A DNA stretch of 22,416 nt from Vitrella brassicaformis CCMP3155 (taxonomy: Eukaryota; Protista; Chromerida). The notes beneath the pieces were generated by a model, which saw only the letters and a program-made list of their open reading frames with translations, searched no databases and was not told the DNA's origin. Shown one piece after another: positions 1 through 22,416 of this stretch. Both the position numbers and the translations under genes were made by a program. Location: positions 1 to 22,416 of the forward strand of contig CDMY01000771.1 of assembly GCA_001179505.1 (NCBI GenBank), written 5' to 3'. The stretch's first letter is position 1, and each line of letters begins with the position of its first letter.

Positions 1-504
1 CAAGTCGACACGTGCATGCGCAGGTGTGTGCAACACAGAGATTCATCATACGCGCACACTCCAAGTCGACACGTGCATGCGCAGGTGTGCGCACACAGAC
101 ATCGGTCAGATACACACACTCCAAGTCGACACGTGCATGCGCAGGGGTGCGCACAACACAGACATTCATCATACGCGCACAGTCCAAGTCGACACGTGCA
201 TGCGCACGTATGCGCACACAGACGTTGGTCACATACACCCTCTCGAAGTCGACACGTGCATGCGCAGGTGTGCGCATGCAGACATTGATCATACGCGCAC
301 ACTCCAAGTCGACACGTGCATGCGCACGTGTGTGTACAGAGACATTGGTCAGATACACACACTCCAAGTCGACACGTGCATGCGCAGGTGTGCGCACAAC
401 ACAGAGATTCATCATACGCGCACACTCCAAGTCGACACGTGCATGCGCAGGTGTGCGCATGCAGACATTCATCATACGCGCACAGTCCAAGTCGACACGT
501 GCAT
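1..504 (+). repeat. ~60-bp minisatellite array A (~8.3 units, runs off the window start)
   Basis: The core (C/G)AAGTCGACACGTGCAT recurs at 1, 62, 122, 185, 245, 305, 365, 428 and 488 (spacing 60-63 bp). Confidence 0.97.
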
Positions 505-1881
505 ACATAAGTGCCTTGCTGCACTGCGCCATAGCATCGTATTCTGACTCACATGTACCCTGTGCAGCAGTGTGCTGGACGCGGCTCCGCCACATGACAG
601 GGCCGCCACCCATGAACACTACATAACCATCAGTCGACTTTGCTCCTGGCTGGTCAGTCAGTGACGCATCAGCATAGCCATCCAGATTGAAAAGAACCAT
701 ACACATGTCATCCACATCCATCGTGTCCCATTCACCGCCAGAGAAAGTGATGCCGAGCTCCCGTGTCCCCTTGATGTAACGTAACACATGATGACACGCA
801 TGTACATGAACAAGTGTGGGTGCATCCAACACACGAGACAGCACGGAACACGCAAAGGACAGATCAGGTCTACATGTAGATGCAGCGTACTGCAGGTGGC
901 CGACTACTGATCTACATGGGAAGTCAGCTATTTTCGCTAGCTCCCTCTCTGAATACTGATCACTACGCACATTGAAGTTGGGGCCGATAGGTAGAGGGCA
1001 ATCGGCCGGCGAACAGTCAGTCATATTGAAGTTCGCTAACACAGCATCCATGTATTTAGCCAGATGGAGTGTGAGCTGGCCATTCTGTCTATCTCGACTG
1101 ACTGACATACCCAAAAACGTACTTACATCACCCAGATCCTCGACTACAAGTCGTTCATTCAGTCTGTCTTGCAGCCACGCATACCCCTCACTCGTCGATG
1201 CAACTACCATATCATCTACATAGCGTGCGAGCAAAATGCCGAGAGACCCCTGGTATTACAGACACGTCTCATTACGATAAGATAGGAAGCCTAGTTCAGA
1301 CAAATACGAATCAATATGCACGTGCCATGCACGAGGTGCACCGGGCAGACCATACAGTGCCCGTTGCAGCTCCATTACACATCCATCTACGCGATAGCCG
1401 TCAGGAAACTCACACCATACAGGCTCATGCAAAGGAGAGTAAAGAAAAGCTGTCTCTACATCCATGTGCTTCAGGTCAAGGTCCATCGCATTGGCTGTGC
1501 TGGCTACGACACGAAACGCATCGAAGCTGAGTGTGGGTGAGAATGTCGGGCCTTTCTCTTGCCATGGTTGCTCAAAACCACGCACCACTATCCTAGCCTT
1601 GAACTTGTGTGCCCGTCCGTACAGCAAACACCCACCCATTTGATAGACAGGACCTGACCTCTGGCTGAGCTACGAGACACTGTCTTGTACACATCCTTTG
1701 CACGTACACTATTCATCTCACGATCCATTGCCTCCTCCCATCTATGTCTCAGTGGACTTTTCATTGCCTGTGCATATGTCTTGGGCCCGCACAAAAGCCG
1801 CGCGTGCGCCAAGTCACGTCTCAACTCCTCATCAATCACAGCAGGCATGGCAATCAGACACATCAGTGAGTGGATGCACAC
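505..1881 (-). pseudogene. pol: Ty1/Copia reverse transcriptase plus N-terminal RNase H, disrupted
   Basis: Manual minus-strand translation gives PKTYAQAM..RWEEAMDREMNS..IKWV, FKARIVVRGFEQ, HMDVETAFLY, LQRALYGL..APRAW, ARYVDDMV (1211-1222), CRSVVGHLQYAASTCRPDLSFA, VLRYIKGT. It then gives the RNase H motifs GYADAS (662-679), KSTDGYV and WRSRVQHTAAQGTCESEY. Frameshift near 1600-1640; in-frame TAA at 1256-1258; cut by array A at ~504. Confidence 0.95.
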
Positions 1882-4219
1882 TCATTCCAAGTACACATAC
1901 GACACAACACGCACATGCACGCACATGTACATTCATGCACCCCTCTGTCTCCCACTCTATCCATACGTCCGCCCCTGCATCACCACCATATCTCTTCTGC
2001 GGCGACTTCCCCAGTCGCTCTCGGATGCGGTCGTTGATCTTCTCCTGCCACTCGCGCTGAGCATGCTGCCTGCGGAGGATGGTGTTGCCGTGCAGCTGCG
2101 GGGCCCTCTTGCTGATGTACTCCTGCAAGGTGGGCATCTTGCTCTCCTCCTCTGCTCTGACGATGTTGACCTGCCGCTGGAGGCACTTGGAGAAGTCGTA
2201 GTTCTCCTCACCGTCACGCTTGGGACGCCGCACATCCCGCCGCAGTCCCTGCCGTCCACCCCCTCTGGTCTGCTGTCCGTCCTGTCCGTCCTGTTGCTGT
2301 GGGGGTTGCTCTTGTGGTGGTGCCTGCACGACCGCAGGTGGTGGGGAGGGTGAGGGTGAGGGTGGGTGAGAGGGTGGGTGGGGCTGCTGCTGGTCTCCTT
2401 GCTGTTGCTGCTGTGCGGGTGGTGGGGGTGGTGGGTTGGAAGACGATGCCCCGGGAGGGTTCTGCCGTGGTGGTGTGGGGGAGGGCGATGCCGTCGATGG
2501 CGTCCGACCGAATGTTGACGGGAAGGGGACGTTGATCTGCACACGCTGCTCACCCATACCGTCACGTGCCCCGCCACACCGACCCCCATGCGCCTCTCCC
2601 ACCCCTGTCCCCTGACCATTGTGTGCCCATGGGGCGGGTGTTGGGTTCTTCATGCGCTCGCGTCGCTCCTTGAAGGGGAAGCGGCTCTCGTCCACGATCA
2701 CCTCCGGTGTCTCGTACACCTTCTTGGTGTCGATGTCGAGGGCGCGATAGGTGCCCTTCATGCGCGGCGCCATGCCCAGCATCACCATCATCTTGCCCTT
2801 GGCCTGCAACCCCCTCCTGATCTCCTTCCTCTGGTGCACAAACGCCGCCGAACCGAAGAGGAAGAGGCCCTTGATGCTCGCCTTCTTGCCGTAGAGGGCG
2901 TAATGGGGGGAGGTGGGTCTGCCGTCAGGGAGCCGTGCCGCCTTGGTCACGGTGATGTTGTACATCCTGACGGCATGGTCGAGGGCGTACGGCCAGTACT
3001 CCTCAGGCATCCCTGAGTCGGCCATGATGGACGTCATCAGCGCCATGAGTATGCCGACCTTGTGCTCGACGACGCCGCCTTGGTTCCTGTGGTATGGGGC
3101 GTTGAACTGCTGGCGGATGCGGTGCTCGATGCAGTACTGCTCCAGCTTGCCGTACCGGAACTCTTTGGCACCGTCGCTCCGCAGCGTCTTGATCTTGCCC
3201 ATGGCCTGCTCGTAGCAGCCCACACACTCAGTGACCTTGTTGCGCGACGGGACGGCGAAGGCACAGATGTGGCGGGTCTTGTCGTCGGTCATGAAGAACC
3301 CCGTGTCGCCCTCGACTGACGCCACCTTCATCGGCTTGTGGTCGAGGTGGACGAGGTCGAAGGCCTCCTTCGCCCGTGTCCCTGGCTCCCTACAGACGTT
3401 CTTGAGCCGCATCTTGCCCGCCACGCAGCCCTCGCACACGCACCCGTCCTCTGGTGGCTTGATGTCGGGCATGCCGTCGACGAACTCCTGTGATTGGGCC
3501 AGCCGTTTGTGGCCGATATGGCACATCAGCCGGTGTGTCCGTTCGGTTGCCGCCACCTCCTCAGCTGTTGCCGTGGCTGCCAGCGATGGGGTGGTCTTGG
3601 GTGGGGGTGTTTTGGATGGGGGTGGTGTCTTGGGTGGGGGTGGGGGAGAGTTGGGGGAGGGCATGGTGGACAGGTAGTAGAGACCGCTCTCTCTGCGCAG
3701 GGGGATGGTCAGCTGGCCGAACTTGATGCACGAACGGGTTCTCTGCAGATGCGTGGTGTAGTTGTACGCTCGATCGAGGGCTCCAGCCGGCAGCAGGTTG
3801 ACGGACAAGTCGGGCACGTACAGCACATCGTGCACTCGCATCTCCACCACACGACCCTCTGCTGTCCACACGGACAGCTGGACATCACCCACCCCCTCTG
3901 CCATTGTTGTGTCCCCCGTCACCGAGCGAATCCGGTACCGTTTGGTGGGTGTGAGGTTGAGGAAGCTGCCCTTGTCGAACATGCAGTGCTTCTGTGCGCC
4001 CGAGTCCGCAATGATGCGGTTGTCCTTCTTGTCCGAGAGGGTGGCCGCCACTCGTGTCTCGATGATGGCGTCCTCCTCACTGCCGCCCGTCTCGTCGCTG
4101 ACCTCCTCCACCCTTGCGTGCGACGCCATGCTGATGCCGTGGGTCTCCTCCGTGACGTACGACTCCTCGAAGACCGGCGAGTTCTCGTCCTCGAATGTCG
4201 CGTTGGTGTGGTATGAGCG
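1832..4219 (-). mobile_element. pol: Ty1/Copia pol: aspartic protease, GAG-pre-integrase HHCC, DDE integrase, SH3-like C-terminus, Pro/Gln-rich linker
   Basis: The 810-aa ORF has IIADSGAQKH (protease, 3995-4006), HRLMCH..CEGC (Zn finger), LVHLD..RSDGAKEF..GGVVEH (D,D,E) and FLFGSAAFVH..LGM..YR..DESRFPF (Copia SH3-like). The PR-INT-RT-RH order is diagnostic of Copia. The first ~14 aa of the ORF come from array B. Confidence 0.95.
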
Positions 4220-4460
4220 ACTCCAAGTCGACACGTGTATGCGCAGGGGTGCGCACAGAGGCATTCATCATATAGACGCAGGTGTGCGCACAGAGGCATT
4301 CATGACATACACGCACTCCAAGTCCACGCGTGCATGCGCAAGTGTGCGCACAGAGGCATTCATGACATACACGCACTCCAAGTCCAGACGTGCCTTCGCA
4401 GGGATGCGCACAGAGGCATTCATCATATACACGCACTCCAAGTCCACACATGCCTGCACA
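4220..4460 (+). repeat. ~60-bp minisatellite array B (~4 units)
   Basis: CTCCAAGTC at 4221, 4316, 4376 and 4436. Local variant CACAGAGGCATTCATGACATACACGCAC. Confidence 0.95.
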
Positions 4461-4631
4461 CGGGGCTCAGCAGATATCTCTCGTAAGGAACCTCTCATCT
4501 CTGTTTTCTCTGTAAGGATCTTTCTTTCTCCGCCCTCCTAGCCTCCCGCCATGGTGCCCTCCCCTCTCTTTGTTGCGACCGTGGTTTTGCTGGGGACTCC
4601 TGGACTCGGCGTATCTGAGGTGGCCTGACTC

Positions 4632-4967
4632 GTGCCAGCGAAGAAGAGCAGCGAACAGGAGCCCCAGTCGTCTCCCTGCCCAGGTGTGTATGACTCGTCT
4701 TACATTATGTCGCGCCCCTGTGTGCACTGGCTGGCCTTGTCTGATGCAGGTGAGGTTACCCGTTTTAGCGGCACCATCGATTCCGTTTTGGGTATGAAGC
4801 GATTCGGGCCCATCACCTACTCGCAAGGAGACGTGGCGGACTTTCTCATCGTGGCGCTGGACACATTTGTGGGTGACGGGGGTCTTTCGTGTACGATGCT
4901 GACGGCGGGTGAGAAAGGGAGGGGTCATGCATGGTGGAATGACATGTGGGTATTTTTTCATGTGTAG
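4632..4967 (+). other. Coding-like orphan fragment with faint resemblance to the ubiquitin-specific protease QQDAxEFL region
   Basis: KRFGPITYSQGDVADFLIVALDTF loosely resembles the USP motif F..Y.QQDAxEFL..LLD. No Cys-box seen. Confidence 0.2.
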
Positions 4968-5911
4968 TGATGTTTTGCAGCCAGATAGACGAGAACTTTT
5001 CCTCTTTCTCTTTCAAAGAGAGTGACACAAGACACAATTACGAAAACGCGGTGAAAGTCGAAACAGCAGATTTCGCGAAGACGATGGCGTTCTTGTTGAA
5101 GTGATCTGCCTCGCGAAGACGTGCGCATTCGTAAGAAACTCCACGGACGGACGGATGCATCACATTTCACTTCATCCACACATATTCACGTGTGGCTATT
5201 TTCTTTCCTTCTTTAAGGAGCTGATCGCGTTCGAGCATACTGGATTCTGTGAACCTTAGCTGGAAGCTGGCGAGACCATCACAGGTACCACTAAGGAAAG
5301 GAAGACATCTGCCGATCTGTAATGACTGGCTCCTTTGGTTCTACGCACAGGGGTGTGCACGTGATCGCTTCATTCGTGCCCACGCTGTGTGTCCCTTAAT
5401 CGGCTCAAAGGAGGAACAACAAAGAGGAGCCAACCGCCAAGACGTTGAACACCAAGACAAGCAAGGGAAAAATCCTGAAGTTGGACAAACCGAAGAAAGG
5501 TGAGTCTTTGTCAAAAGAAATGCAGTGATCAATCATTCATGTCACCCACTATACGTATTCCATCCGTGATATAGCAACATCTGCTCGCCGAGAGGTAGAA
5601 GGCTTGTTCGGCTGCCCCCTTCTTAGCGCGCTTCTCGAGGACAGTACAGCGACACCTCCTATGCAGAGCATCGTCCAGGTAGACGAAACAGGACGGACAC
5701 CTGAACAGGACTTGCGATTTGTATGATGTCATTATCGTTTGATCAGAGTGGCACTGAGCAACAAATTGTGATCGACCTGCTATTCCTTGCCCAGAGCCAG
5801 ATCGGGATCTCTCAAGTGGTGATCGCTGCCACTCCCTTCAAGTGCACGAAGCATGAATGAATGCCTACTCAGCAAGATGCAGGGCTTCAAACGTGTGTTT
5901 GGATGACGCAG

Positions 5912-6583
5912 GGTAACGCCAACCTCCGCGTCACCGTTGATGGGTAGGCATTTATTCATGATTCCAACTCTTACGTATGCTATATGTATGCTTGAATGTC
6001 TGCAGCGAGGAGTGTCCGGATGATCCGGAGGTTTGCCCCAGGGCTACTTCTGCGAATCCTTCGGATACTCCCGAGCTAGACGTCGCTGATACCGTATATG
6101 AAGACGCGGTTGTCGTGAGCACCAGTGCAGGTGAAAGACTAGATGTGTTCGTCACCCCAGCAGACAACCCAGACGGCGAGCCCCAAGACGCCATCGTGGT
6201 ACGCATGCATTGCAGGCAGTCCTGCGTCCACATACAAGTTCTTGTATTTGTATGTGTGTGGGCGATGCAGGAGATCATTGTCTTGAGCTACAATGGGTGC
6301 AGATCGATAACGTTCCCGTAGAGCAAGTGCCCTTCGGCCCCCCTCCTGTCGACAAGTATGCTCATCAGTCTAAAGTGATCCATCCCAAGTATGCACACAC
6401 ACTTGCATCTTATCACGTTGTGTCGACAGCGCTGGCGCTCACGATGTGGATCCAGCCGATGTGCATGATGGTGGCAATGGTGCTGATGCAGGGGATGGTG
6501 GCGACGCGGGGGATGGGGGCGACAGTGGCGATGGTGGTGATGCGGGGGATGGCGGCAATACGGGGGGAGAGCTCGAGCGCTGA
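5912..6583 (+). CDS. 3' exons of a multi-exon gene for an acidic protein with a C-terminal (DGGDAG)n repeat; function unknown
   Basis: Phase-consistent GT-AG exons 5912-5943, 6006-6198, 6303-6355 and 6430-6583 give GNANLRVTVDGEECPDDPEVC...DAIVIDNVPVEQVPFGPPPVDNAGAHDVDPADVHDGGNGADAGDGGDAGDGGDSGDGGDAGDGGNTGGELER*. Further upstream exons are likely at ~5400-5840. Confidence 0.6.
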
Positions 6584-6837
6584 TGCGAAACAACGATCTT
6601 CATCAAGATGGGTGTGTGAGTGGAGGTACTTGTGTTCTTTCTTGATAGAAGCTGAATTGGTTTTTCTCCCGCTCCTTGATTTGCGGTCTTAGCGGCATTT
6701 TCCCCGAGGCTATTACTGTCAACGGACAGGGTGTCTCCCTTGCTGCCATGAAATGTTAGGGATTAATGGAATTATGAGTGCGACAGTTTTTCGGGTTTTT
6801 CGTCTCCGAATGGTGTGCGCGTGCTTTGCTCGATATG

Positions 6838-6880
6838 GAGTGGACGGGTTGGCCTGTTCAATGGGCCAGCCCGTCCACTC
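6838..6880. repeat. 17-bp inverted repeat / hairpin with a 9-nt loop
   Basis: GAGTGGACGGGTTGGCC-tgttcaatg-GGCCAGCCCGTCCACTC, with one T:G mismatch. Confidence 0.9.
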
Positions 6881-7475
6881 TAAAAAGTTTAGCTGGACTG
6901 CATGTGTGACACCATGTGTGGGTAGTGTGAGTCTCGTTCCTTCTCCCATCTTCTGACTGCCTGTGTGCACCGAGTGGGCTGACTTGGTTGCTGGCTGTGT
7001 GACTCACTGATTTGTGTTAGAACATTCGATATATACATTAAGTCAGATCGCAATCAACCTTCATTTCTCGCTATCAAACACACGATTTCATCAGTTGGTT
7101 CCTCCGCTTAGGCAATTTTCTCTTTTGACTATATAGTGGGGAGCCGTATATCACATTTTCGAGCTGAAACGGTTTCTTCTGGGACTGACGGCATCTGCAT
7201 TAGAACGACATAATGAAAGCTTCATTTTGCACTATCTGTGGTTCGGTGACTATTGTCGTCTCGTGTGCACGACTTGTGGCTCGACGAAGTAGTGGATATG
7301 CTCAGCCGCCCATCACAATACGCCAGAAGATAAAGAGAATAGCTCAGCTTCTCATTGATTTTGCATTGTGAAGGCACGTTCGACCTGCGTCTGCATCTGC
7401 GTAGGCCACAGACTCACAGAGCAATTACATATAAGTATCTTTGCACTGATTGATTTATCGTATTGCGTTCGCAAG

Positions 7476-8225
7476 ATATCGATATCTCTGCGCTAAGCCT
7501 GTTGACGAGCAAGTGCATTCTCTGCAGCAGCTCAGGAATGAGGCCATCACAGCCGCGGAGAATATGTACGAGATGAAAGGGGAGATGGCCAAGGCGCATG
7601 GGAGCTTTAATATCTTCGTCAGGGACTGTTCCACACACAGTGAGAGAAAACATAGACTGTTTTGTCTGATTGTCTGATTGTTTATTGTGTGTGTCTGTCT
7701 GTCTGTCTGTCTGTCTGTGAGTCCTGAAGAGAGCGCGGTGTCCCTGAACGTCGGGCGGGACGAGTCGGTGTGGGCTGTCAAGGCAAAGCTGCAGCACAAA
7801 GAGGGCATCCCCGCCAGCAAACAGACTCTTACCCACCAATCGACAAAAATGGACAACAACCGCACACTGGCTGCCTACAATGTTCGGAAAGAGGCAACTC
7901 TGCATCTGTATTTTTCGTGAGGACAGAACAATGCAGACAATAGATATCATACCCGATCGTGCATCCTGGCTGTTGGTGCATGTCTTGCAGTGTCCGTGCG
8001 GGCACTCTTGATGCCACCAGTGGCCGTCATGATTTCGAAGCAAGCACCGATGTGTCGGTCAACCAGCTGTCGATGCTAACAGGTATGGATGAAAATGGTG
8101 CCACGCTGGTCGAAGCCTAGGATGGCAAGAAAAAGGTACTCAAGCTGGTCGGCGAGGTGACAAAGGCCTTTGAAGACATGGCAATGCTCACCAATATCCT
8201 ACTCACCAGGCTCCGCCAAACCTGA
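7476..8225 (+). CDS. Ubiquitin-like (Ubl) domain protein, multi-exon, possibly pseudogenised
   Basis: Exons 7476-7639, 7730-7916 and 7991 onward give FNIFVRDCSTHKSAVSLNVGRDESVWAVKAKLQHKEGIPASKQTLTHQSTKMDNNRTLAAYNVRKEATLHLYFSVRAGTLDATSGRHDF. This aligns with ubiquitin (IFVK..VKAKIQDKEGIP..RTLSDYNIQKESTLHL). In-frame TAG at 8118-8120, with the frame open to TGA 8223-8225. Confidence 0.85.
7692..7716 (+). repeat. (GTCT)n intronic microsatellite
   Basis: Directly visible. Similar (CA)n tracts lie at ~12872-12896, ~16858-16881 and ~20638-20682, and (GA)n at ~12327-12346. Confidence 0.9.
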
Positions 8226-8409
8226 TCATGCAAAATACAAGCAGACAAGACAGCAACACAACCCTCTCACTGCATACACAAGCCTGCATCATGTGTATGT
8301 ACGTGTGTGTGCAGTTTGGCGATAGAGACACGTAGCGAAACAGACACACGTTGAGCTTTCGTCTGCACGTATCAGGCACACACTCATGTATAAGTCAATG
8401 AGGCACAAA

Positions 8410-9071
8410 CTAACACGCAAATACGACAGAGTGGGACGGAAAGGGGGGGGAGGAAGACACAGCACCGATTGGCATGCTTCCGTTCACTTTCTGCGAGCTC
8501 GGCCGAAGCTCGCCACCATCCTCTTCGATCGCAAAGCGGCACCTATATGTTGCCGTCTCCCGCAGCGCTTTTGCAGATCTGCCTTCTGCCCCCTTGCATG
8601 TTGCGTGTTGCATGTTCCATGTTGCCTGTTGCGTGCTGGACAAATATGGGACCAGGCCGTCGGGCCGCCTAGGGCATGTCGTGAAATCGCTGCCGCAGCT
8701 CATTTGGTAAGCGAGGAGGCGGTCACAAACTACCGAGGTCCCTGACTTGAGGCGCAGCATCGTGCTGACTAGAACAGTCATCGACATAATTCCCCCGCTC
8801 TGGTTTCGAATTCTTACTGGCGGCAAAGTGGATCTGCATTCCTTTGTTCGTTCTCCTTTAACGGCACTATCTGCGTCTGAGCGCTCACGGCGCTTTCGCG
8901 TGATGCCCTAGGTTTGAGTCTTTCATCGATCGTAAATTCGACCTCCAGACGACCCGAATCCTCGCTTCCATACAATTGCGGGCTCAGCAAATCCGAGAAA
9001 TGGTCCCCGTGCAGTCCTATGGAAGTGCTTGCATTGAGTAAGGACAACATGTGCGCTGGAGTATTAAGCAA
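8410..9071 (-). CDS. Possible exons of an unidentified minus-strand gene
   Basis: Coding-like stretches (SVVCDRLLAYQMSCGSDF..., RSAKALRETATYRCRFAIEEDGGELRPSSQK|gtgaac) separated by intron-like sequence. No recognisable motif. Confidence 0.25.
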
Positions 9072-9262
9072 GGGATGATGAATATGGCATATTTCTATCT
9101 GTAGATTGTATGACCATGGATACTACGCCACAGGGCTATAGGGTCATCCCGGGACCTCGTTCATTCATTCATTACACCTCTTCTCCACTATTCCCCCCGC
9201 TCCCCTTCCCCGCTCCCCTGAAAGAAGGAGAGTCGTATTACACTCTCGAGCATTCATCCCTC

Positions 9263-10020: not shown

Positions 10021-10037
10021 TCCACGCGACTTGAAGG

Positions 10038-13143: not shown

Positions 13144-13790
13144 GTGTGCGCACACCTGCGCATGCACGTGTGGACTTGGAGTGCGTGTATATGATTGATG
13201 TCTCTGTGCGCATGCACGTGTCGACTTGGAGTGCGTGTATATGATGAATGTCGTCTTGGAGTGTGTGTATATGATGAATGTCTGTGTGCGCACACCTGCG
13301 CATGCACGTGTGGACTTGGAGTGCGTGTATATGATGAATGTCTGTGTGCGCACACCTGCGCATGCACGTGTGGACTTGGAGTGCGTGCCTCTGATGAATG
13401 TCTGTGTGCGCACCCTTGCGCATGCACGTGTCGACTTGGAGTGCGTGTATGTCATGAATGTCTCTGTGAGAACACCTGCGCATGCACCTGCGTGTCTATG
13501 ATGAATGTCTCTGTGCGCACACCTGCGCATGCACCTGCGCATGCACGTGTAGACTTGGAGTGCCACCTGCGCATACACGTGCGCATGCACCTGCGCATGC
13601 ACGTGTGGACTTGGAGTGCATGTATATCATGAATGTCTGTGTGCGCACACCTGCGCATGCACGTGCGCATGAACGGGTGGACTTGGAGTGCGTGTATATG
13701 ATGAATGTCTGTGTGTGCGCACCACTGCGCATGCAAGTGCGCATGAACGGGTGGACTTGGAGTGCATGTATATCATGAATGTCTGTGTGC
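13144..13790 (-). repeat. ~60-bp minisatellite array E (reverse orientation, ~10 units plus scrambled sub-modules)
   Basis: Repeated GACTTGGAGTG (e.g. ~13173, 13223, 13313, 13373, 13433, 13553, 13608, 13680, 13754). Confidence 0.97.
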
Positions 13791-13799
13791 GCACACCGG

Positions 13800-14654
13800 C
13801 GCATGCACAGACATTCATCACATACACACACTCCAAGTCCACACGTGCATGCGCAGGTGTGCGCACAGAAACATTCATCATATGCAGACACTCCAAGTCG
13901 ACGCGGGCATAGGCAGGTGTGCGCACAGCGACATTCATCATATACACACACTCCAAGTCCACACGTGCATGCGCAGGTGTGCGCAGAGAGACATTCATTA
14001 TATGCACACACTCCACACACTCCAAGTCCACCCGTGCATGCACACGTGCATGCGCAGGTACATTCATCACATACGCACACTCCAAGTCCACACGTGCATG
14101 CGCAGGTGTGCGACATTCATCACATACGCACACTCCAAGTCCACACGTGCATGCGCAGGTGTGCGCACAGAGACATTCCTCAGATACACACTCCAAGTCC
14201 AAACGTGCATGCGCAGGTGTGCGGACGGCGACATTCATCACATACGCATACTCCAAGTCCACACGTGCATGCGCAGGTGTGCGCAGAGAGACATTCATCA
14301 TATGCACACACTCCAAGTCCACACGTGCAGGCGCAGGTGTGCGCACAGCGACACAAGTCCACACGTGCATGCGCAGGTGTGCGCACAGAGACATTCATTA
14401 TATGCACACACTCCACACACTCCAAGTCCAAACGTGCATGCGCAGGTGTGCGCTCAGCGACATTCATCACATACGCACACTCCAAGTCCACACGTGCATG
14501 CGCAGGTGTGCGCAGAGAGACATTCATCATATGCACACACTCCAAGTCGACACGTGCATGCGCAGGTGTGCGCACAGCGACATTCATCACATACACACAC
14601 TCCAAGTCCACACGTGCATGCGCAGGTGTGCGCATAGCGACATTCATTATATGC
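13800..14654 (+). repeat. ~60-bp minisatellite array F (~14 units), inverted relative to E
   Basis: CTCCAAGTC at 13831, 13891, 13951, ~14020, 14080, ~14133, 14191, 14251, 14311, ~14420, 14481, 14541 and 14601. Confidence 0.97.
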
Positions 14655-14657
14655 TTT

Positions 14658-16770
14658 GAGTGTCTTCGTGCTGAGAGAGGAGACACAGGAACCCTTCTAC
14701 ATGTGGACGTTGGAGCACGTAGTCTTCCTCCACCCTCCGAGCCACTTTACAGACAGGAAGGTGGGCGAAGCAGACGAGCCTAAACATACGTCGGCTATGG
14801 CTTGTCTGTATGCTGTGTTTGGTTAGTGGCGTCACTTGATTGACACCGATGGAGTGAGCCATAGGCGCTAATCACCCATCATTGGCCGTTCAATCTTGCC
14901 TTTTCATTGTGCTTGCTTGGTTTTGCAGCCACTCAAGGCGATAAAGCTTGACGACATTCACACAATCGAGCAGGATCAACACGTCGTGTCGCTGTACGAC
15001 CGAGACGACACTCTGCTACTGTCTCTCCAGCCGACCAACAACGACAGAGACCTGCTGATTGGCCAAGCCATCGAGGATCAAAGATCTGAGACTTTAGAGG
15101 AGCCGTTTCAAGAGACACCCCTCAAGCAGGACAGCCTCTTGATCCCACTGCGCTCTCAAAGTGATGAGCAGCTGAAGCCGTCGGTGTTCTGTTCGGCTCA
15201 ACCTTCCATCCATGAGATGACGGAAGCGCAGCAGGACCCGCATGTGACGTTGGTCCCCAGCGGCGTAGCAGCAGTGGCCCAGGTCATCCGTGCGGCGAAA
15301 GAGGCGAGGAAAATTCTGCTGGAGACCTATGCGGGAGAAGCTGAGGGAAAAGCAGCAAGTGCTTTCTCTCTTGATGGCCCAGTGGTGTGTTCGGCCTGCT
15401 TCTGTATGGTCAATGGTCAATGCGCACACATCTGGTGGACTCATGACGGACTGGTAAGCGCAACTGGTCACCGAGGAGAAAAGCACCTTTTTGTCTATTT
15501 CCCTTTTTTTCTTTCCTTGTTTTTTCAGGTGCTCAATGTGGTCTCGGACGATTCAAACATGACCCACGGCTACTTCGTGAAGGACATGTCAGAACCGACA
15601 CTTGAGGAGACGGTAGTCTCCCTCGGAATCATCAGAGTAAGCGCACCACGTCGTGTGTATGCTGAAATGAGATCCGTGTTTTCTTCTGTGTCTCGCCAGC
15701 TGGCATTCACCGATCCCCTCACTGCCGAGTCCTTCAGCCGCATTATCGCCTACCTAAAGACCCAACAAATATCAGATGGCCAGGATGAGGCGCTGCAGAA
15801 GCAGAGACGTGATGCCATCACGAGCTTCTACGCGGGCACCGAGTCGCAGCGGCCCTCCGTGACCTCGACTTATCGCCGCCCCTCTGTGGCCGACGGTGGC
15901 AAGACCGGCACGCCACTGGTGATAACGCACAGAGAGACAGAATGTGAGAGACGTGAGAGCAATGCTGTGCCTTCTGTCAGGCAAGGGCAGCTGCTGATCG
16001 ATTACGGTACCTTCGGTGCAAAAATAGGAAGATTCTCACTCAAGTTGCGACGAGGGATCATCCCCTGCTATCCTCGTGAGCAAATGATAAGAAACGTGTC
16101 CACAACGTGTCCTCACCTTCCTGCATTTTGCAGGCTTAAATACAACACCTTCTCTACACATGCCCAGCGCTTTGCGGCGTTAGAAGCATCTTTAATAGGC
16201 ATGATCACCATCTCTTCCCTCTTCTTCTGGTCCAATTGCGCCACCGTCCATATTGTCGGACACCAGATTGACCCGTATGTTGACTCGGGCGCCGTCTACT
16301 TGTCCCGGGTGTGTGACCCTCCCACGGTGACGCATCTGCCGTCCGCTGCCACAGTGACTGTGTCGGTATTGTCCTTTGTCATCGCCTCGGCTGTCGACTT
16401 CGTCATTTATGCGCTCTTCAGGAGATTTGTGATTGAAGTGAGGGAAGAAGAGATAAGAGAGACGCGTGTGTGCTCGGATATGTCTCGTGGATCTCTTTGC
16501 TCGTTTGCAGGATGAGATGTCTGCTGCCGAGAAAGGGATGCAGGTCCACCTTTGGAGGGTGATGGACTTCATTGGCTGGACGCTCTGGACATCGTGGAAT
16601 GTCGCCTGTGTCGGGTGGGATGTCCTGTTTATTGGGGTGAGTGAAGCTGCTGCAAATGGATACCAAAGCGCTCGGACATACGTGCTGCCGTCCCTGTGTG
16701 GGTTGCAGAACCAGCAAGACGTGTTGATCGGCCAGTGGATGTGGGCCTCACTTCTTGGCAGCGCTTACCG
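14658..16770 (+). CDS. Polycystin-1 (PKD1/PKDREJ)-like multipass membrane protein, internal fragment truncated at both ends
   Basis: Phase-consistent exons 14658-14760, 14929-15453, 15529-15918, 15981-16075, 16134-16437, 16511-16636 and 16709-16770 give RDHPLLSSLKYNTFSTHAQRFAALEASLIGMITISSLFF...VTVSVLSFVIASAVDFVIYALFRR...FIGWTLWTSWNVACVGWDVLFIG..QWMWASLLG. This recalls the polycystin-1 TM cluster (H.W.S...FTR.QR..MFY; ..LFR; IGW..; WL.S). The family call is by pattern only. Confidence 0.6.
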
Positions 16771-16804
16771 GTCAGTTAGCTTGCTCTCTGTCTCTTTCAC
16801 TCAC

Positions 16805-17516
16805 CCAGGTGGAGATTCATCAGCTGTAGCACGTCATCCAGCGTCTGCACAGTCGCCCACACACACACACACACACACACATACATACAAACAAACACCA
16901 CACACATGCGATGGGCTGTGCGCCTGCACCCACCTCGTCGAGCAGGCTGATGTTGTGGTCGAGGAGCTCCACCTCCTGCATGTAGCACTCGAGCAACAGC
17001 TCCACGTCCTCGGTGCTGTACGGCTCATCACCGGCCTCCTCGTGCTCGTGGTTTTCGGGCGATACTGGCCCGGCAGCGTTCCTCCCCTCCTCAGACTGAT
17101 AGTCCATCGGTCTGTCTGCCGTCCCTGCATTCGTCTGCTGCTCCTCAGCACCAACATCACGCGTGCCAAACTGGCAACAGAAGGAAAAGGGAGACAGATG
17201 AATGTGTGTGAGTCTGGTGGGGGTGGTGTGGCGTACATGTGGGCTGTCTGCGAGTGAGTGTGCGGAGCCGTGAAATGCCTCGGCGAATGTGGGTGAAAGG
17301 GTGGCCGCGCGGTGGTCGTGGCCCTTCCTGTGCACAGTGTGGAGCACGTGCTGCTGAGAGAACCGCCGCGCGACGTCTGCTGAGGGGGTTTCGACCAATA
17401 TCGACGATGTTGTTAGGGACGATGCGTTGACGTTGGATGAGTGGGTCTGCGTCATGTGTGCGCGGGCCAGGGAGGAGCAGACGGGGGGCAGGGAGGGGAA
17501 GGGAGGCGCTTCGGAA
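16805..17516 (-). pseudogene. MRS2: MRS2/CorA-family Mg2+ transporter fragment lacking the C-terminal GMN/TM part
   Basis: Exons 17516-17237, 17170-16934 and 16844-16805 give a low-complexity insert, then EDVELLLECYMQEVELLDHNISLLDETLDDVLQLMNLHL. This is the MRS2/CorA helix that precedes LD..RN and GMN; the downstream exons were not found. Confidence 0.7.
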
Positions 17517-17542
17517 CTGATGGATTAACAAGGGAGACACAG

Positions 17543-18118
17543 TCATGTGTTGGATATTGCCGGTATGTCTCTCCGTGTATGTGCTGACTGACACCCTTTT
17601 CCGTCTTGCCTTGTGCGCTCCCCGATGGCGGAGATGGGGAGAGGAGGCACAGGAGGCGGAGAAGCTCTTCTGCGAGAATCCTCTTCTGCAGCTTGCTTTG
17701 ACGAGACTTCCTCGACGAGCGCCTTCAACCCTCTGACCTCGGCTTTCAGCTCCTCCTGAATCTTCCCACCCCCTTTTAGCTGGTTCCCATGCCTCCCTTG
17801 CACAGTCTGGACCCCACCCAGCGCCTCTTTCACGCCAGCAATCTCCGCCCGGACTTCCTTGGCCTTCTTGATCATCGCTTCCTTCAGGCTCTCAGTGGCG
17901 TCTTTGTTCTCCGCCATGTGACAATCGGTGCGAGACAGATGTTCTTTGAACGACTTGATGAGAGCGTCCATGGTGAAGTCCACCTTAAGCTCCAGCCGAC
18001 AGAGACGCTCATCCATCTTCTCCTGCCATTCATCGTGGTGGCTGCATTCAACGTTTGGCGCCTGGGGCTTTGCATCATATTGCATGGTGCTGCTGTACCG
18101 TGTCGCCCAGCCGGACAA
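17543..18118 (-). CDS. Coiled-coil orphan ORF/exon
   Basis: 191-aa ORF with heptad-like helices (MDERLCRLELKVD..KEVRAEIAGVKEAL..IQEELKAEVRGLKALVEEV). A possible GC-AG splice at ~17625 would be in phase with the exon starting at 17516. Confidence 0.5.
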   Translation of the reverse strand: MSGWATRYSSTMQYDAKPQAPNVECSHHDEWQEKMDERLCRLELKVDFTMDALIKSFKEHLSRTDCHMAENKDATESLKEAMIKKAKEVRAEIAGVKEALGGVQTVQGRHGNQLKGGGKIQEELKAEVRGLKALVEEVSSKQAAEEDSRRRASPPPVPPLPISAIGERTRQDGKGCQSAHTRRDIPAISNT

Positions 18119-18357
18119 TGGGGGATAGGAAGCAGTGCCGCCCGCCGTGTCAGGTCCCGTCCACTTGAGTCAGATGGTGCTCGCCGTGGGCCTACTTGGA
18201 ATCATTGCAGATTAAGAGTGGTGGTGGTTAAGGGTAAGATTGTCCGTGTGTCCATGCGCTGGGACGGTCGATTACATGTCCGCATCTGAACTATTGACAG
18301 CAACGATCAAAACATTCGCTACCTACCCATGTACGCCCACCCACCCACCGCCTGCAA

Positions 18358-19035
18358 TCAACGAGGGTGGAAAGGCCCCCGCTCTAGCAACAGTCCCTCA
18401 GCAAAACCCGCCCTCTCCTGCCCATTCCACCTGCTTGCCCGCCACGCCCTGCTCCGCACCATGTGTGCGTTGCCCTTCTGCAGCAGCAGACTAAGTCGAG
18501 CCCACCACCTCTCCACTGCTGTCTCGCGGAAAAACTCCACATCGCCCTCCTCCATATAGACAGGTGGCCGCATGTGTCGGGCCATACGGTTGAGAAGGGC
18601 AGCCGCCTCGTCCCCCCACCGTCCGTAGCTCTCCGCCGACAGTGGGACGAAGGTGAAGTTGCTTGCTCTCGCCTCTGTGCCGTATTTGCTGTGCTTCCTG
18701 TCGGCCGCGTTGCGCAGCGCCTTGCCGTCTTCTGCCCCGTTCTGCCTGTTGGTGGCCGCGTGGTGTCTGTTGGTGAAGGGGTCGGGGCGTGTGGGGTGGG
18801 CGATGGTGACGTCGCCGAGCATGCTTTTTCCCTCCTCCACCCAGTAGAGGTCGTTGTAGGCAAGAGCTCGCGAGCCAACGCCGTCCCCAACTTGGAAAGC
18901 CGTGGGATCTTCGTTTTGATGTCCTTCAGTAAGTTCTCTCCCCGTCTCGCATGCGGACTGTGCCCCCATCGAGCCCCCACCCTGCTCCTCGGAGTCCCCA
19001 AAGACAAAGGCAAGAGGCACACCAGGAAGGTCCAC
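18358..19035 (-). mobile_element. Non-LTR retrotransposon (CRE/R2-type) C-terminal restriction-like PD-(D/E)xK endonuclease, 5'-truncated
   Basis: YNDLYWVEEGKSMLGDVTIAHP...AADRKHSKY...FTFVPLSAESYGRWGDEAAALL...RLSLLLQKGNA matches the typical D..DVT..P / K..KY / F.P...E..G.WG / LS..LQRGNA pattern. No RT domain is present upstream. Confidence 0.85.
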
Positions 19036-19079
19036 TGACAGGTCTTGACAACGCTTCGTCTGTTGTGTGGTCAGATGAT

Positions 19080-19440
19080 GGACAACCGGTTTACCCGCCC
19101 ATCATGGCAGCGGTCCCTCGCCCTCGCCCAACGCCTTCAACGACTTCTTCCACTCCGTCACCACTTGCCAGTATGATGCTGTGCAGCGGTGCTTCGAGAG
19201 AGAGGATCCCACGCCCTACATGCAGGCTACTGATCAAGTCAATACGGGGAGGGGGATGCGTCAATCACGTTTGGTGAGGGAGATATGCCTGGCTTGTTTC
19301 CCGCTGTGTCTGTCAGACGCTCAAGACGTGTCTGCACTTGGCTGCCAAGGGGGGTTTGCAGATCTGGTGCACTTCTTCATCACCCTCGGGGCCGCCATCG
19401 AAGCCAGAGAGCGAATCGGGAGGACGCCGCTGCGGTGCGC
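19080..19440 (+). pseudogene. Ankyrin-repeat protein fragment, frameshifted and cut by array G
   Basis: FNDFFHSVTTCQYDAVQRCFE..ATDQ|TLKTCLHLAAKGG (exon from 19317), then a 1-nt frameshift in the G6 run at 19349-19354, then FADLVHFFITLGAAIEARERIGRTPLRCA. These are canonical ankyrin motifs. Confidence 0.85.
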
Positions 19441-20290
19441 AAAAAGACATTCATGAGATACACACACTCCAAGTCCACACGTGCGTGCGCAGGTGTGCGC
19501 AAGGAGACATTCATGAGATACACACACGTGCGTGCGCAGGTGTGCGCACACAGACATTCAGTATGTACAAACACACCAAGTCGACACGTGGGTGCGCAGG
19601 GGTGCGCACAGAGACATTCATGACATACACACACTCCAAGTCCACACGTGCATGCGCAGGTGTGCGCACAGAGACATTCATGGGTGCGCAAAGAGACATT
19701 CATGAGATACACACACTCCAAGTCGACACGTGCATGCGCAGGGGTGCGCACAGAGACATTCATGACATACAAACACTCCAAGTCTACACGTGCATGCGCA
19801 GGTGTGCGCACAGAGACATTCATGGGTGCGCAAAGAGACATTCATGAGATACACACACTCCAAGTCGACACGTGCATGCGCAGGGGTGGTGCGCAAAGAG
19901 ACATTCATGAGATACACACACTCCAAGTCGACACGTGCATGCGCAGGTGTGCGCACAGAGACTTTCATGAGATGCGCAGGTGTGCGCAAAGAGACATTCA
20001 TGAGATACACACACTCCAAGTCCACACGTGCATGCGCAGGTGTGCGCACAGAGACATTCATGAGATACACACACGTGCGTGCGCAGGTGTGCGCACACAA
20101 ACATTCAGTATGTACAAACACACCAAGTCGACACGTGGGTGCGCAGGTGTGCGCACAGAGACATTCATGAGATACACAAACTCCAAGTCCACACGTGCGT
20201 GCGCAGGGGTGCGCACAGAGACATTCATGAGATACACACACTCCAAGTCCACACGTGCGTGCGCAGGTGTGCGCACAGAGACATTCGTCA
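19434..20290 (+). repeat. ~60-bp minisatellite array G (~12 units)
   Basis: Repeated CCAAGTC(C/G/T)ACACGTG. Local variant CACAGAGACATTCATGAGATACACACAC. Confidence 0.97.
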
Positions 20291-20368
20291 TGTGTGTGGA
20301 TGGATGTGTGAGGGATGGATGTGTGGATGGACGCGTCGGTGGGTGGATGGGTGCCATGGATGCCAACA

Positions 20369-20640
20369 GCACTTCTTCAAGCTCTCGTTGTGTATGGGAT
20401 GTTTGAGTTCGTGGCGCGTGTGTGTTTATGTACAGGATGGGTGGCCGTGATGTGTGGCGGTTGTGTGTGGTGCACTGTATGTGCCCGATATCTGCCCTCA
20501 CAGAGACACTGTCAGGTGTGTGTGCGTGTGTGTCTGTGTGTCATACGATGGATAGCACTACGAAAGTATACATGGCCCCCTGTAGTGTGCCGCCGCAGCA
20601 GCATGTGGTTGTCGGAGCCAGCCCTGCGACAAACACGCAC
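20369..20640 (+). other. Short exon-like segments between microsatellite-rich introns; unidentified
   Basis: ccaacag|CACTTCTTCAAGCTCTCGTTGTGTATGGG (LLQALVVYGMFEFVA) and gtacag|...CAG|gtgtg splice-like boundaries. Confidence 0.25.
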
Positions 20641-21699
20641 ACAGAACACACACACACGCACACACACGCACACACACACACACGGAGAGTATACAACAAC
20701 GCATCCATCTGTCTACCTCCCCCTCACTGACCGAGAAACCTTTGATGAGGCGACCACATGAAGGGGGCCGCATGGGAAGCCCCATGCAACGGAACCAAAG
20801 GGATTGCAAGTCAGAGGGCGCCTGCCCAAAGCCGAGGCGAAACCTGATAGCGCGAAAACAGATAGCGCGAGAGCGTGTACATAATTGAGTGGCCGTCTCT
20901 CACGAAGCAACCCAGGTGTCACTGCAGAAGGTCTCGCATCATGAAAAAGTCCGTTTCCAATGTGAACGAATTGACAATGCGTCTCTGAGAGACAGAGAGG
21001 CTGTGTGTAAAGTGGGAGGCATTGTGTTGCACTGTCGCGTCGTGCGTTCTCTGTCACGATGGACCGAGTCATATACAACTGTCTCACAGATGGCATGTCT
21101 GGAGAACCAAACAAATAACCCCTCCCGTGACGTGCTAACCATGGGTGCTACATGCACACAACATATGACAGACCAGAGAAAATGCACCGCGAAGAAAAAT
21201 AGGGCCTCACGAGGGAGAAAAATGTACGCGAGACGATGAGTGCACACTCGTATGTGCCTCCTACGCCTCTTATCAGTGTTCGAACACTCATGGCCTACTC
21301 TCACATATCTTCGTTCGTCGAAAGCTACCCTGGCTTCATCTGCCTGTCACATTGCACGGACACATAGGAAAAAGAGTGCGCTCACAAAGAAAAAGAGGGG
21401 CTCGCGAGGTAAGAAAAAATATACCCAATGATAGGTGTAGAAGCCTACTTGGCTAGTCATTATATTACAAGACTCGTACCGTACTCACATGTCTTCGTCC
21501 ATTGAAGCCTCCAGCCTACCTTCAGCCGGCTCGCTTCCATTCGCACACGAGACGTCAACAATCAGCACCCGCTCTCTATCAGCGGCCTCTCTGAGTTGAA
21601 CGTCTTCCTCTTGTCCATGGCCATTTACCTGACAAAGAAGAGGAAAGGAGCTGCACACATAACATACTAGAGCAAGATGCCTTAGGGAAGGGATGATGC

Positions 21700-22229
21700 A
21701 GCTATGGCTGCTGGTCGTTTTCTGTCGGTGTCTGCTGCTTCAGCGGCTGAGACTCGGGCGCAACCTACACACACACACAAGAGGTCATGGCTGCATCCAC
21801 GAAACCGCAAAGTGGACCTCGCTACCTCTCCATTTGGGGCGGGCAGGTAGTCATTGCCTCTCAGCGGCTGTCGCACCGGGTCGCCCCCAGCCACACTCAC
21901 GTTGTGCACCACTCGCACACCTATACCAGCATATATACACGCTCATGTACACTCGTGTGCGTGTCTATGTCTGTGTGTGTGAGCGTACTGTCGAGTTGTG
22001 GCTGCAAGGGGACCATCTGTGTGGCCATGGGTGGGGCGGTCGGCAAATCTCCCACTGTGTAGCCAGCCAACTGACACACACACAACACACCACAGCACAC
22101 ACAATACGCACAGACGTGTGCACAGCGGCAGGGGGCATCTGTCTGTCCGTGTAGTGTGGATGGGTGGATGGATGGGGTCATACATTGGCCGTGCCCAGGA
22201 CCGGGTCCAGCCCAGTCGTTACCACCAGC
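21700..22229 (-). CDS. 3' exons of an unidentified multi-exon gene; upstream exon cut by array H
   Basis: Splice-like boundaries (CCAAT|gtatga, acacag|TGGGAG, GACA|gtacgc, GAG|gtagcg, tgtag|GTTGCG) with a terminal VAPESQPLKQQTPTENDQQP*. The frame of the upstream exons is ambiguous. Confidence 0.35.
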
Positions 22230-22416
22230 GAGTGTGTGTATATCATGAATGTCTCTCACCTGCGCATGCACGTGTCGACTTGGAGTCTGTGTATATGATG
22301 AATGGATCTGTGCGCACATCTGCGCATGCACGTGCGGACCTGGAGTGTGTGTATATGATGAATGTCTCTGTGCGCACACCTGCGCATGCACGTGTGGACT
22401 TGGAGTGCGTGTATAT
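22230..22416 (-). repeat. ~60-bp minisatellite array H (reverse orientation, runs off the window end)
   Basis: GACTTGGAGT / GACCTGGAGT repeats with ATGAATGTCTCTGTGCGCACACCTGCGCATGCACGTG. Confidence 0.97.

Follow-up and report, generated by a model that had tools for sequence, protein, structure and literature searches.

Satellite arrays among truncated transposon and gene blocks on a scaffold of the chromerid alga Vitrella brassicaformis

Pericentromeres of plants and animals are mosaics of satellite DNA, LTR-retrotransposon fragments and segmental duplications. End joining at double-strand breaks can capture filler, as with Ty1 cDNA in yeast and filler DNA in plants. For mollusc satellite DNAs, Satovic et al. 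(2016, PMC5139131) describe, in part of their study, abrupt changes between monomers and unrelated sequence at mostly random junction positions. The flanks described there are anonymous DNA, short transposon segments and other repeats, with short arrays or partial monomers embedded. Part of a study on the oyster Crassostrea gigas (PMC7492417) describes non-autonomous Helentron/Helitron elements that carry satellite-like tandem repeats.

The window analysed here, a stretch of 22,416 bp, is the entire scaffold C771 of the Vitrella brassicaformis assembly, and both its ends lie in a 60-bp satellite. As far as the cited part describes the mollusc satellites, the Vitrella arrays share with them abrupt junctions, random phases and embedded short arrays. 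Unlike those, they occur in a chromerid alga, no Helitron link was found, arrays often meet in inverted orientation, and many junctions are demonstrably inherited through duplicated composite blocks. Short scattered arrays, as well as satellite-like units inside one block (E1) that run on into canonical arrays in two copies, resemble what is described of the oyster elements; in contrast to these, element termini and an association with Rep were sought in Vitrella and not found. With pericentromeric mosaics the locus shares an abundant satellite that breaks the assembly, old truncated Copia copies, a clean insertion of a Copia LTR in an array, a block order common to scaffolds, and local homogenisation of arrays. 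Unlike in described pericentromeric or heterochromatic mosaics, a centromere link of the Vitrella compartment would be putative. An internal Copia fragment without LTRs, whose two ends each show 2-3 bp of microhomology, and small patches between unrelated flanks are reminiscent of filler capture, but this Copia copy is indistinguishable from an insertion followed by two deletions, and the comparison covers only five junctions with known parents.

Satellite arrays and make-up of the scaffold

An earlier note on this DNA had mapped eight arrays of one repeat family in both orientations. Mapping by TRF and by blastn searches using three satellite units taken from the window reproduced this map to within a few bases (Table 1). 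The arrays are head-to-tail with a 60-bp period (TRF scores 185-980, 2.7-14 copies per array) and show higher-order periods of 120-243 bp. At least 440 matches to the satellite were found on many scaffolds, far beyond chance. Identity is 92-95% within arrays and 76-89% between them; each array is homogenised locally. As the earlier note had stated, array ends fall at differing phases of the unit and target-site duplications were not seen at the window arrays. Indeed, the phase differs at each edge in the window, without phase continuity across the intervening blocks, and the phases of 58 edges were uniform over the monomer (chi-square, p=0.73).

Satellite makes up 16% of the window and single-copy DNA ~20%, while the remainder is mostly multi-copy at 74-97%. 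The window had been pictured as a mosaic of host and transposon pieces. A mosaic of transposon and gene pieces it is, but the flanks are mostly multi-copy rather than unique host genes.

Table 1. Features of the 22,416-bp window
Feature	Position	Strand	Details
Satellite array	1-502	+	Runs off scaffold start; 123/243-bp higher-order pattern; within-array identity 92.8%; TRF and blastn
Ty1/Copia internal fragment	503-4224	-	Pfam BBD, gag-pre-integrase, rve, SH3, RVT_2; 89-91% identity to full copy
Satellite array, different subfamily	4220-4464	+	Closest relative on C630 (92%); only 76-79% like the 1-502 array
Single-copy DNA	4465-7206		Sole genome match is itself; no recognisable domain in Pfam
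Dispersed repeat copy	7233-8530	+	At least 25 partial copies, 74-93%; ubiquitin-like open frame 7678-7917
Multi-copy block E1	8525-10062	+	At least 10 copies, 79-95%; terminal part 9735-~10030 made up of about five degenerate satellite-like units
Degenerate satellite-like units	9735-9785 and 9823-9926	+	Part of E1; blastn/TRF
Single-copy DNA	10066-11082		275-codon minus-strand open frame without relatives; unitigs 9884-11126
Composite block	11083-11650	+	18 bp, 149-bp array (11101-11249) and right flank; unitig 11223-11829
Satellite array, 149 bp	11101-11249	+	Carried in composite block 11083-11650
MITE-like element	11925-12418		48-bp terminal inverted repeats
Copy of C411 sequence	12519-13143	+	74-79%; stops at satellite edge
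Satellite array	13144-13808	-	TRF and blastn; 10-bp overlap with opposite-strand array 13799-14650
Satellite array	13799-14650	+	TRF and blastn; inverted relative to 13144-13808
2.1-kb part of a family spanning at least 4.7 kb	14653-16779	+	C318, 84%; C887, twice at 74-77%
Ankyrin-gene block piece	16769-19433	+	Duplicated block of at least 7 kb on C381, C622 and C651; 94%
High-copy insertion, 636 bp	18218-18853		95-98% to many copies; site empty in paralogous blocks
Satellite array	19428-20286	+	Locally homogenised (95%)
Mixed stretch	20287-22229		~0.7 kb mostly single-copy, then two diverged copies: C659/C803/C508 (77-81%) and C98 (74%)
Satellite array	22230-22416	-	Runs off scaffold end

Truncated blocks and their junctions

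Truncations were confirmed wherever longer copies exist (Copia, 14653-16779 and 16769-19433). Array edges had been placed inside truncated coding sequence. This holds for Copia and ankyrin, as judged by the longer copies, but the array at 9735-10020 marks no breakpoint, and the 'propeller-like' and 'polycystin-like' exons found no support in Pfam or Atlas, nor did the orphan ORF or an 'exon at 22230'. Comparison of the window with the longer copies bore out that the interrupted sequence is never taken up again beyond the array.

The Copia fragment (window coordinates 502-4224) corresponds to L001:4351-8334 within a full element at L001:3800-9716 and lacks gag, both LTRs and the final ~340 bp before the 3' LTR. 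Its domains follow the Copia order on the minus strand: Pol_BBD (1.3e-13), gag_pre-integrs, rve, SH3_retrovirus (2.7e-13) and RVT_2 (2.7e-20). Since neither an LTR pair nor a target-site duplication is present in the window copy, it is a fragment and not a whole element. Microhomologies of CAT at 502/503 and AC at 4224 were observed at its edges. The full copy on scaffold C541 has LTRs of ~150-210 bp that start with TG and have diverged (85-88% alike); on C541 the satellite adjoins the exact TG start of the LTR, as expected for Copia insertion into an array.

The piece at 14653-16779 corresponds to L015:2668-4818 of its family and contains a 547-codon open frame (14872-16512) that is annotated as an orphan protein. 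The neighbouring piece at 16769-19433 (L018:2720-4739) derives from a block that elsewhere goes on with ankyrin exons (Ank, E=2.7e-15). In the window an ankyrin exon, in a frame with an Ank_5 match (E=9.6e-07), is cut at 19433 between residues GRTPL and H. In E1, the supposed breakpoint array consists instead of degenerate units inside the multi-copy block. These units occur in all copies, even those only 79% alike, and after them comes the beginning of an inverted satellite unit that is common to four other copies; in two copies, canonical arrays begin inside the degenerate units. The apparent 5' end of E1 is a scaffold gap.

About ten junctions in the scaffold are direct joins between truncated blocks, with no satellite involved. 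At one of them, 16775/76, 2 bp of microhomology (GT) lie within an imperfect match of 8/10. At least three satellite/flank junctions are inherited in composite blocks on other scaffolds at 79-96% identity, and hence are not independent capping events. These include the E1 units with the inverted unit that follows (common to 4-10 copies) and the composite block at 11083-11650, which is found on C508 up to 11360 at 96% and whose 11083-11360 part shares its right junction with C615 at ~79%. As the 149-bp array travels in this composite block, the break lies at 11082/11083 and not near 11100, where it had been placed. The 11083-11360 part, a satellite-containing patch of 278 bp, lies between unrelated flanks at two loci, and 12 of 70 sampled edges have a flank in common with another edge.

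A genome-wide comparison of the flanks, which had been proposed as a way to the parent sequences, yielded longer copies for five junctions, most flanks being multi-copy. Microhomology at these five junctions is 0-3 bp, as end joining would give, and reaches at least 2 bp at 3/5, which is weakly above chance (P ~0.16 per junction, binomial p ~0.03). Next to the ankyrin block, the side and relative orientation of the adjoining satellite agree between the window and C651; next to Copia, they agree between the window and C541. This fits different deletions across one old boundary. The arrays beside the paralogous blocks are not mutual closest relatives, so this scenario rests on side and orientation, in two cases only.

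Origin of the mosaic and its bearing on the genome

We consider it probable that the window is a heterochromatin-like repeat island formed by duplication, boundary deletions, end joining and growth of arrays in place. Its features resemble what repeat-rich DNA ordinarily acquires by decay and copying, rather than a novel mobile or end-capping system. In keeping with such a compartment, many other small scaffolds contain the satellite or terminate in it, as this one does at both ends. The satellite is dispensable for junction formation. Because about ten junctions are free of it and at least three others were inherited with it, it does not hold up as the active agent; of the earlier proposal of joining by microhomology repair, the 0-3 bp at the known-parent junctions stand, while an active role of the satellite does not. 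We infer an order of events and repair pathways in a compartment where a very abundant 60-bp satellite would lie together with old copies of transposons and with duplicated blocks that carry genes. Large composite stretches of satellite and neighbouring sequence would first be duplicated between loci. Pieces would then be lost through deletions and illegitimate or end-joining recombination, with one breakpoint often falling in the adjacent array, so that the truncated sequence would come to lie directly against satellite at a random phase. Transposon insertions would follow, and the arrays would expand and homogenise in place via unequal exchange or slippage.

It is doubtful that the satellite itself is break-prone and recombinogenic. 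In this case the palindrome-bearing monomer would often provoke double-strand breaks or stalled forks, repair by end joining or template switching would capture filler such as Copia cDNA and gene pieces, and short satellite seeds with a little flank, themselves copied as filler into other breaks, would then expand in place. The junctional microhomology, the 278-bp patch, flanking arrays that are out of phase and of differing subfamilies, and a Copia piece without both LTRs, like captured cDNA fragments, are in line with such events. So are opposite-strand satellite junctions with 4-18 bp overlap, suggestive of strand switches, on four scaffolds, and telomere repeats joined directly onto satellite on C1017; breakpoints per assembled kb, which are somewhat commoner in satellite than outside, would also be accounted for. 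However, while every monomer contains a hairpin with a 7-bp stem, its z-score is only -1.87, and with edge phases uniform the palindromic core is no breakpoint hot spot. Furthermore, the satellite-free junctions need another cause, the inherited ones leave few independent events, and satellite-telomere contact was found at only one duplicated site. If the satellite did act in this way, its dispersal would be driven by repair and gene fragments would be shuffled without a transposon, which would make the alga a compact system for satellite spread and gene-piece shuffling. With the same low probability, the compartment might be a first candidate for a chromerid centromere-type region.

Still less probable is an assembly artefact, in which local junctions are real but unrelated flanks were joined through collapsed arrays, making the scaffold order partly fictitious. 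The source assembly was built from Illumina reads only (velvet k=75, SSPACE, Gapfiller, IMAGE), satellite lies at both ends of this scaffold, and scaffold gaps made false 'insertions' in related loci. The summed word depth of the satellite, which is not a strict copy number, is 10^4-10^5x that of unique DNA in three studies, indicating that arrays are strongly collapsed in the assembly. No Logan record was found across any array longer than ~150 bp, and linkage over long arrays is therefore putative. Against an artefact, three culture studies yielded unitigs over 9884-11126 (identical to the scaffold in two of the studies, 0 differences), 11223-11829 and 12907-13173, the last reading across the satellite junction at 13143/13144. 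They confirm the local junctions there, and the truncations tested between 9884 and 13173 are thus present at the unitig level. The satellite-free junctions show the same patchwork, and REAPR was used to check the published assembly against mate pairs. Block order and orientation also recur: on C381, E1 precedes the ankyrin block with order and strand unchanged, and on C659, Copia and the 20981-21647 block keep their arrangement too.

It is very improbable that a non-autonomous transposon, of Helitron/Helentron type or E1 itself, carries the satellite as its internal tandem repeat and has spread it by transposition together with captured fragments. The units in every E1 copy, the canonical arrays starting within two of them, the arrays borne by Helentrons in oyster (PMC7492417, in the part cited) and the presence of Helitron Rep genes in the genome (14 Helitron_like_N hits) would suit this idea, the Helitron form of which the earlier note had raised. 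Yet no conserved element termini were found beside the arrays: each array has flanks of its own and the edges are spread over all phases of the monomer, unlike the termini at fixed positions (5' TC, 3' hairpin plus CTRR) that a Helitron would have. None of the Helitron_like_N scaffolds is among the listed top satellite matches or the retrieved satellite loci, and the search for a Rep/helicase element bearing the unit found no satellite in ~8 kb around the two best Helitron_like_N loci. E1 and its upstream DNA contain no transposase, Rep or RT domain, and E1 shows no definable ends. Scarcely credible is a dedicated activity, telomerase-like or retroelement-driven, that heals broken ends by templated addition of the 60-bp repeat: many truncation points do bear satellite, but, contrary to what templated addition predicts, arrays face either way with respect to the cut sequence and start at any phase, they are internal, of differing subfamilies and marked by higher-order local duplication rather than uniform synthesis, the window holds no telomere tract, and TTTAGGG is found at true chromosome ends on other contigs.

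In part of the Vitrella genome paper, only 1.5 Mb of transposons are reported and satellites are named only in the repeat-detection methods. Together with the satellite-ended scaffolds, this small tally points to a repeat compartment that is poorly assembled and probably far larger in the actual genome. The ordinary, partly inherited nature of the satellite/fragment junctions calls for caution against over-reading similar patchworks in this genome. Gene models predicted on scaffolds of this type are best regarded as likely fragments of pseudogenes, for example the orphan protein at 14872-16512 and the cut ankyrin gene, whose block also carries the young 636-bp insertion.

Satellite arrays of the window

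Arrays of the 60-bp satellite were mapped with Tandem Repeats Finder and with blastn, using three units from the window itself. The array coordinates of the earlier note were correct within a few bases. At least 440 genomic matches belong to the satellite family, most of them on scaffolds 5-90 kb long. Several satellite-bearing scaffolds begin or finish in satellite, and the window scaffold does so at both ends. No description of the 60-bp satellite was found in the literature searched.

Satellite arrays and satellite-free junctions on the window scaffold
Feature	Position	Strand	Remark
Satellite array	1-502	+	runs off scaffold start
Satellite array	4220-4464	+	
Satellite array, degenerate	9735-9785 and 9823-9926	+	
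Satellite array, 149 bp	11101-11249	+	
Satellite array	13144-13808	-	10-bp overlap with next array
Satellite array	13799-14650	+	
Satellite array	19428-20286	+	
Satellite array	22230-22416	-	runs off scaffold end
Satellite-free junction	near 7206-7233		
Satellite-free junction	near 8525-8530		
Satellite-free junction	near 10062-10066		
Satellite-free junction	near 11082/83		
Satellite-free junction	near 16775/76		
Satellite-free junction	near 20980		
Satellite-free junction	near 21647-21667		
Satellite-free junctions, several	within 11650-12520		

The window is scaffold C771 at its full length of 22,416 bp. Its assembly (72,700,666 bp in 1,064 scaffolds) rests solely on Illumina data, assembled by velvet (k=75), scaffolded with SSPACE and gap-filled with Gapfiller and IMAGE (PMC4501334); such data do not allow reliable assembly of a 60-bp satellite. 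Summed over satellite, word depth in the Logan contigs of three culture studies is 10^4-10^5x that of the single-copy part; although this ratio cannot be taken as a strict copy number, it indicates that the assembled arrays are strongly collapsed. Transposable elements account for only 1.5 Mb in the genome paper (PMC4501334). The window consists of 16% satellite and ~20% single-copy sequence, and most of the remainder is multi-copy with 74-97% identity. The scaffold is thus part of a minor repeat-rich fraction, the rest of the genome being repeat-poor.

Units are 92-95% identical within arrays and 76-89% between them, and the nearest relatives of several window arrays are on other scaffolds. 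This difference and the subfamily pattern indicate that each array grew and homogenised in place. A simple insertion of blocks into one array was rejected, since the phase changes from 8 to 50 across the Copia piece and from 41 to 12 across 14651-19427, and the arrays on either side of Copia are the least alike pair in the window. Oppositely oriented arrays meet at 13144-14650 and also on C508 (L025), C703 (L036) and C630 (L040). At these strand switches the phases differ and the arrays overlap by 4-18 bp; three of the five clean switches lie within a GCATGC/CACGTG palindromic core.

Truncated flanks and inherited junctions

Forty related loci were compared with the window and among themselves. 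The earlier note had described arrays that border interrupted sequences, and this observation is largely right. Three flanks are truly cut, each being longer in parent copies. A full element with diverged LTRs on C541 (L001:3800-9716) contains, as L001:4351-8334, the counterpart of the Copia piece at 503-4224 (minus strand; Pfam domains Pol_BBD, gag-pre-integrase, rve, SH3 and RVT_2). Because the match covers only this interval, the window copy is missing gag and both LTRs, together with the final ~340 bp preceding the 3' LTR. The segment 14653-16779 corresponds to L015:2668-4818 of a family whose similarity extends over at least 4.7 kb, with one copy on C318, two on C887 and satellite absent nearby. 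The segment 16769-19433 corresponds to L018:2720-4739 of a parent block that stays 95-97% alike for at least 7 kb among C381, C622 and C651. At the 19433 break the parent frame reads GRTPLH, with Ank_5 matching at the break itself (9.6e-07), and it continues through more ankyrin exons downstream (Ank, 2.7e-15), so the flank read as ankyrin GRTPLR had been correctly identified. For these three flanks the far side of the array never resumes the cut sequence. As had been claimed, edge phases differ and no target-site duplication was seen. The phases do not continue across any block.

Other flank assignments found no backing. Pfam and Atlas searches, in the window and in the parents, were negative for the flanks called polycystin-like and propeller-like, for the orphan-ORF flank and for the flank at 22230. 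The break beside the orphan frame does exist, at 11082/11083 and not at 11100. Within 14872-16512 an open frame of 547 codons, annotated as orphan P0001 (477 aa), lies inside the partial duplicate of the family of at least 4.7 kb. A homologue search with this frame matched its own annotated model only and nothing outside the species, with no Pfam or Atlas match; in the C318 copy the frame is disrupted.

The array at 9735-10020, one of the eight listed by the earlier note, is not breakpoint-located. It consists of about five degenerate monomer-like units inside E1, a multi-copy block (8525-~10030) with at least ten copies of 79-95% identity that all carry such units. The degenerate units (window 9735-10030; L006-L014) are 65-75% like the satellite and are kept even in copies that are 79% alike, and canonical arrays begin inside them in two copies. 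They represent either an ancient array or a satellite seed. An apparent 5' terminus of E1 at L007:1999 was an N-run artefact, other copies extending upstream, and an apparent 1.3-kb satellite-bearing insertion on C725 was a scaffold gap. One E1 copy (L008, on C687) carries a 122-bp insertion at 2382-2503, flanked by a 10-bp duplication, which is not in the window copy.

The block from 11083 is composed of 18 bp, the 149-bp array and its right flank, and it recurs on C508 at 96% identity between different flanks. The right-hand junction of this array is also present on C615 (~79%). Of the window's satellite/flank junctions, at least three were inherited inside duplicated composite blocks, and 12 of 70 sampled array edges have a flank in common with another edge. 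Shared block boundaries were also considered as natural element ends, which was rejected because the HSP ends merely mark the limit of the window's homology. Among the parents there was no case of an array inserted in sequence that is contiguous elsewhere.

Junction structure and probable stepwise history

On the window scaffold, truncated or unrelated blocks meet without satellite at about ten junctions. Where both parents are known, at the 16775/76 join, GT is shared within an 8/10 imperfect match; the four satellite junctions with known parents share 3, 2, 0 and 0 bp. Microhomology of 0-3 bp is expected from end joining or illegitimate recombination, and values of at least 2 bp at three of five junctions are a weak excess over chance (p ~0.03, an estimate). 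The 58 edges without a shared flank are distributed evenly over the monomer (chi-square p=0.73 with six bins, 0.37 with twelve), and arrays are found in either orientation. Uniform phases and both orientations are the opposite of the prediction from templated end-adding or from an element with fixed termini. We consider it probable that the scaffold is an ordinary repeat island, formed via duplication, boundary deletions, end joining, transposon insertion and in-place array growth.

Shared order is visible in two instances: E1 is followed by the ankyrin block on C381, and Copia by the 20981-21647 block on C659, each in the same order and strand as in the window. The ankyrin block is cut at a different point in every copy: in the window at the equivalent of L018:4739 by satellite, on C381 at L018:5923 by non-satellite DNA, and on C651 ~2.2 kb farther along, by satellite. 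In the window and on C651 the array lies on the same side of this block in the same relative orientation. Side and relative orientation of the satellite beside Copia likewise agree between the window and C541 copies, and in the latter copy the satellite abuts the exact TG start of the Copia LTR, as a clean insertion into the array would leave it. In an older arrangement the block would have stood beside an array, and different deletions, each starting in the array and ending in the block, would automatically have placed truncated sequence against satellite at random phase. The two cases are no more than suggestive of such a history. The adjacent arrays of paralogous blocks are not mutual closest relatives, for which fast array turnover could be the cause, and array relatedness gave no signal of common ancestry of the paralogous junctions.

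Ongoing transposon activity is visible in two elements. A 636-bp element (18218-18853) is 95-98% identical to dozens of copies genome-wide, full or truncated at one end, whereas the paralogous blocks on C381, C622 and C651 have an empty site. This young mobile element lacks inverted ends, duplicates at most 2 bp of target and bears at one end a short run of GGT/CCA type. A MITE-like element (11925-12418) has 48-bp terminal inverted repeats (96% complementary) with 398 bp between them and roughly 18 copies by word depth. The dispersed repeat family at 7233-8530, represented on large scaffolds by at least 25 partial copies, contains a ubiquitin-like open frame at 7678-7917 (Pfam ubiquitin, E=1.1e-12).

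Pericentromeric heterochromatin is usually made up of satellite, fragments of LTR retroelements and segmental duplications, and the compartment of the window may be likened to it, with satellite, LTR-retroelement fragments and duplications. In a study of four molluscs (PMC5139131), every satellite junction is abrupt and only one satellite has a preferred junction site; the flanks there comprise anonymous DNA containing short segments of transposons and satellites, or else portions of Helitrons. The pattern in the Vitrella window matches this description.

Alternative readings and telomeric sequence

The interpretation of the satellite as a junction-forming agent is only partly supported: the mosaic of cut pieces stands, whereas the satellite-free and inherited junctions and the uniform phases speak against the satellite as its agent. 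A break-prone satellite that captures and seeds fragments is a rather unlikely explanation of the mosaic.

A partly chimeric assembly is unlikely. Logan contigs from four runs of four studies were compared with window 8400-13400. The interval 9884-11126 is covered with 0 differences in two studies, and 9882-10754 in a third; the 9884-11126 records run across the E1 end and through two junctions, one at 10062-10066 and one, into the array, at 11082/83. Records over 11223-11829 cross the 11249/50 junction, and those over 12907-13173 cross the 13143/44 junction. The local junctions within 8400-13400 are therefore real, and the pattern of truncation is no artefact in itself. No record in this interval spans an array longer than ~150 bp, and some links across long arrays or at the scaffold's other junctions could be false. 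The record over the entire 149-bp array has seven differences, as many as separate the window from the C508 copy over 11097-11252. One run (X10), a 2025 marine-sediment metagenome, contains DNA near-identical to 8400-13400 with scattered single-base differences, which indicates that the alga or a very close relative is present in that environment and that wild relatives exist.

It is very unlikely that the satellite is the internal repeat of a transposon. Satellite-like arrays are borne by Helentrons in oyster (PMC7492417); the defining features of that kind were looked for here and not found. Helitron_like_N has 14 hits in the genome, and its scaffolds are absent from the top satellite matches listed and from the fetched satellite loci. 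The earlier note had proposed a search for a Rep/helicase or RT element with the same unit; the two best Helitron_like_N loci hold no satellite within ~8 kb around each. E1 and the DNA upstream of it contain no transposase, Rep or RT domain, and the uniform edge phases argue against this reading as well. A dedicated end-healing activity is extremely improbable in view of both orientations, uniform phases, at least three inherited junctions and about ten satellite-free ones.

TTTAGGG tracts are present at the ends of other contigs. A subtelomeric location was rejected, as the window has no telomere repeats and none of the first 100 of 345 telomere matches lies on the satellite scaffolds studied here. 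A direct satellite-telomere junction was found at only one duplicated site, on C1017. There, two identical junctions (G000:C1017:1089-1143 and 2066-2120) lead from satellite straight into TTTAGGG, in the orientation that addition of a telomere to a broken end would produce; with the pattern used, no other site of this kind was found.
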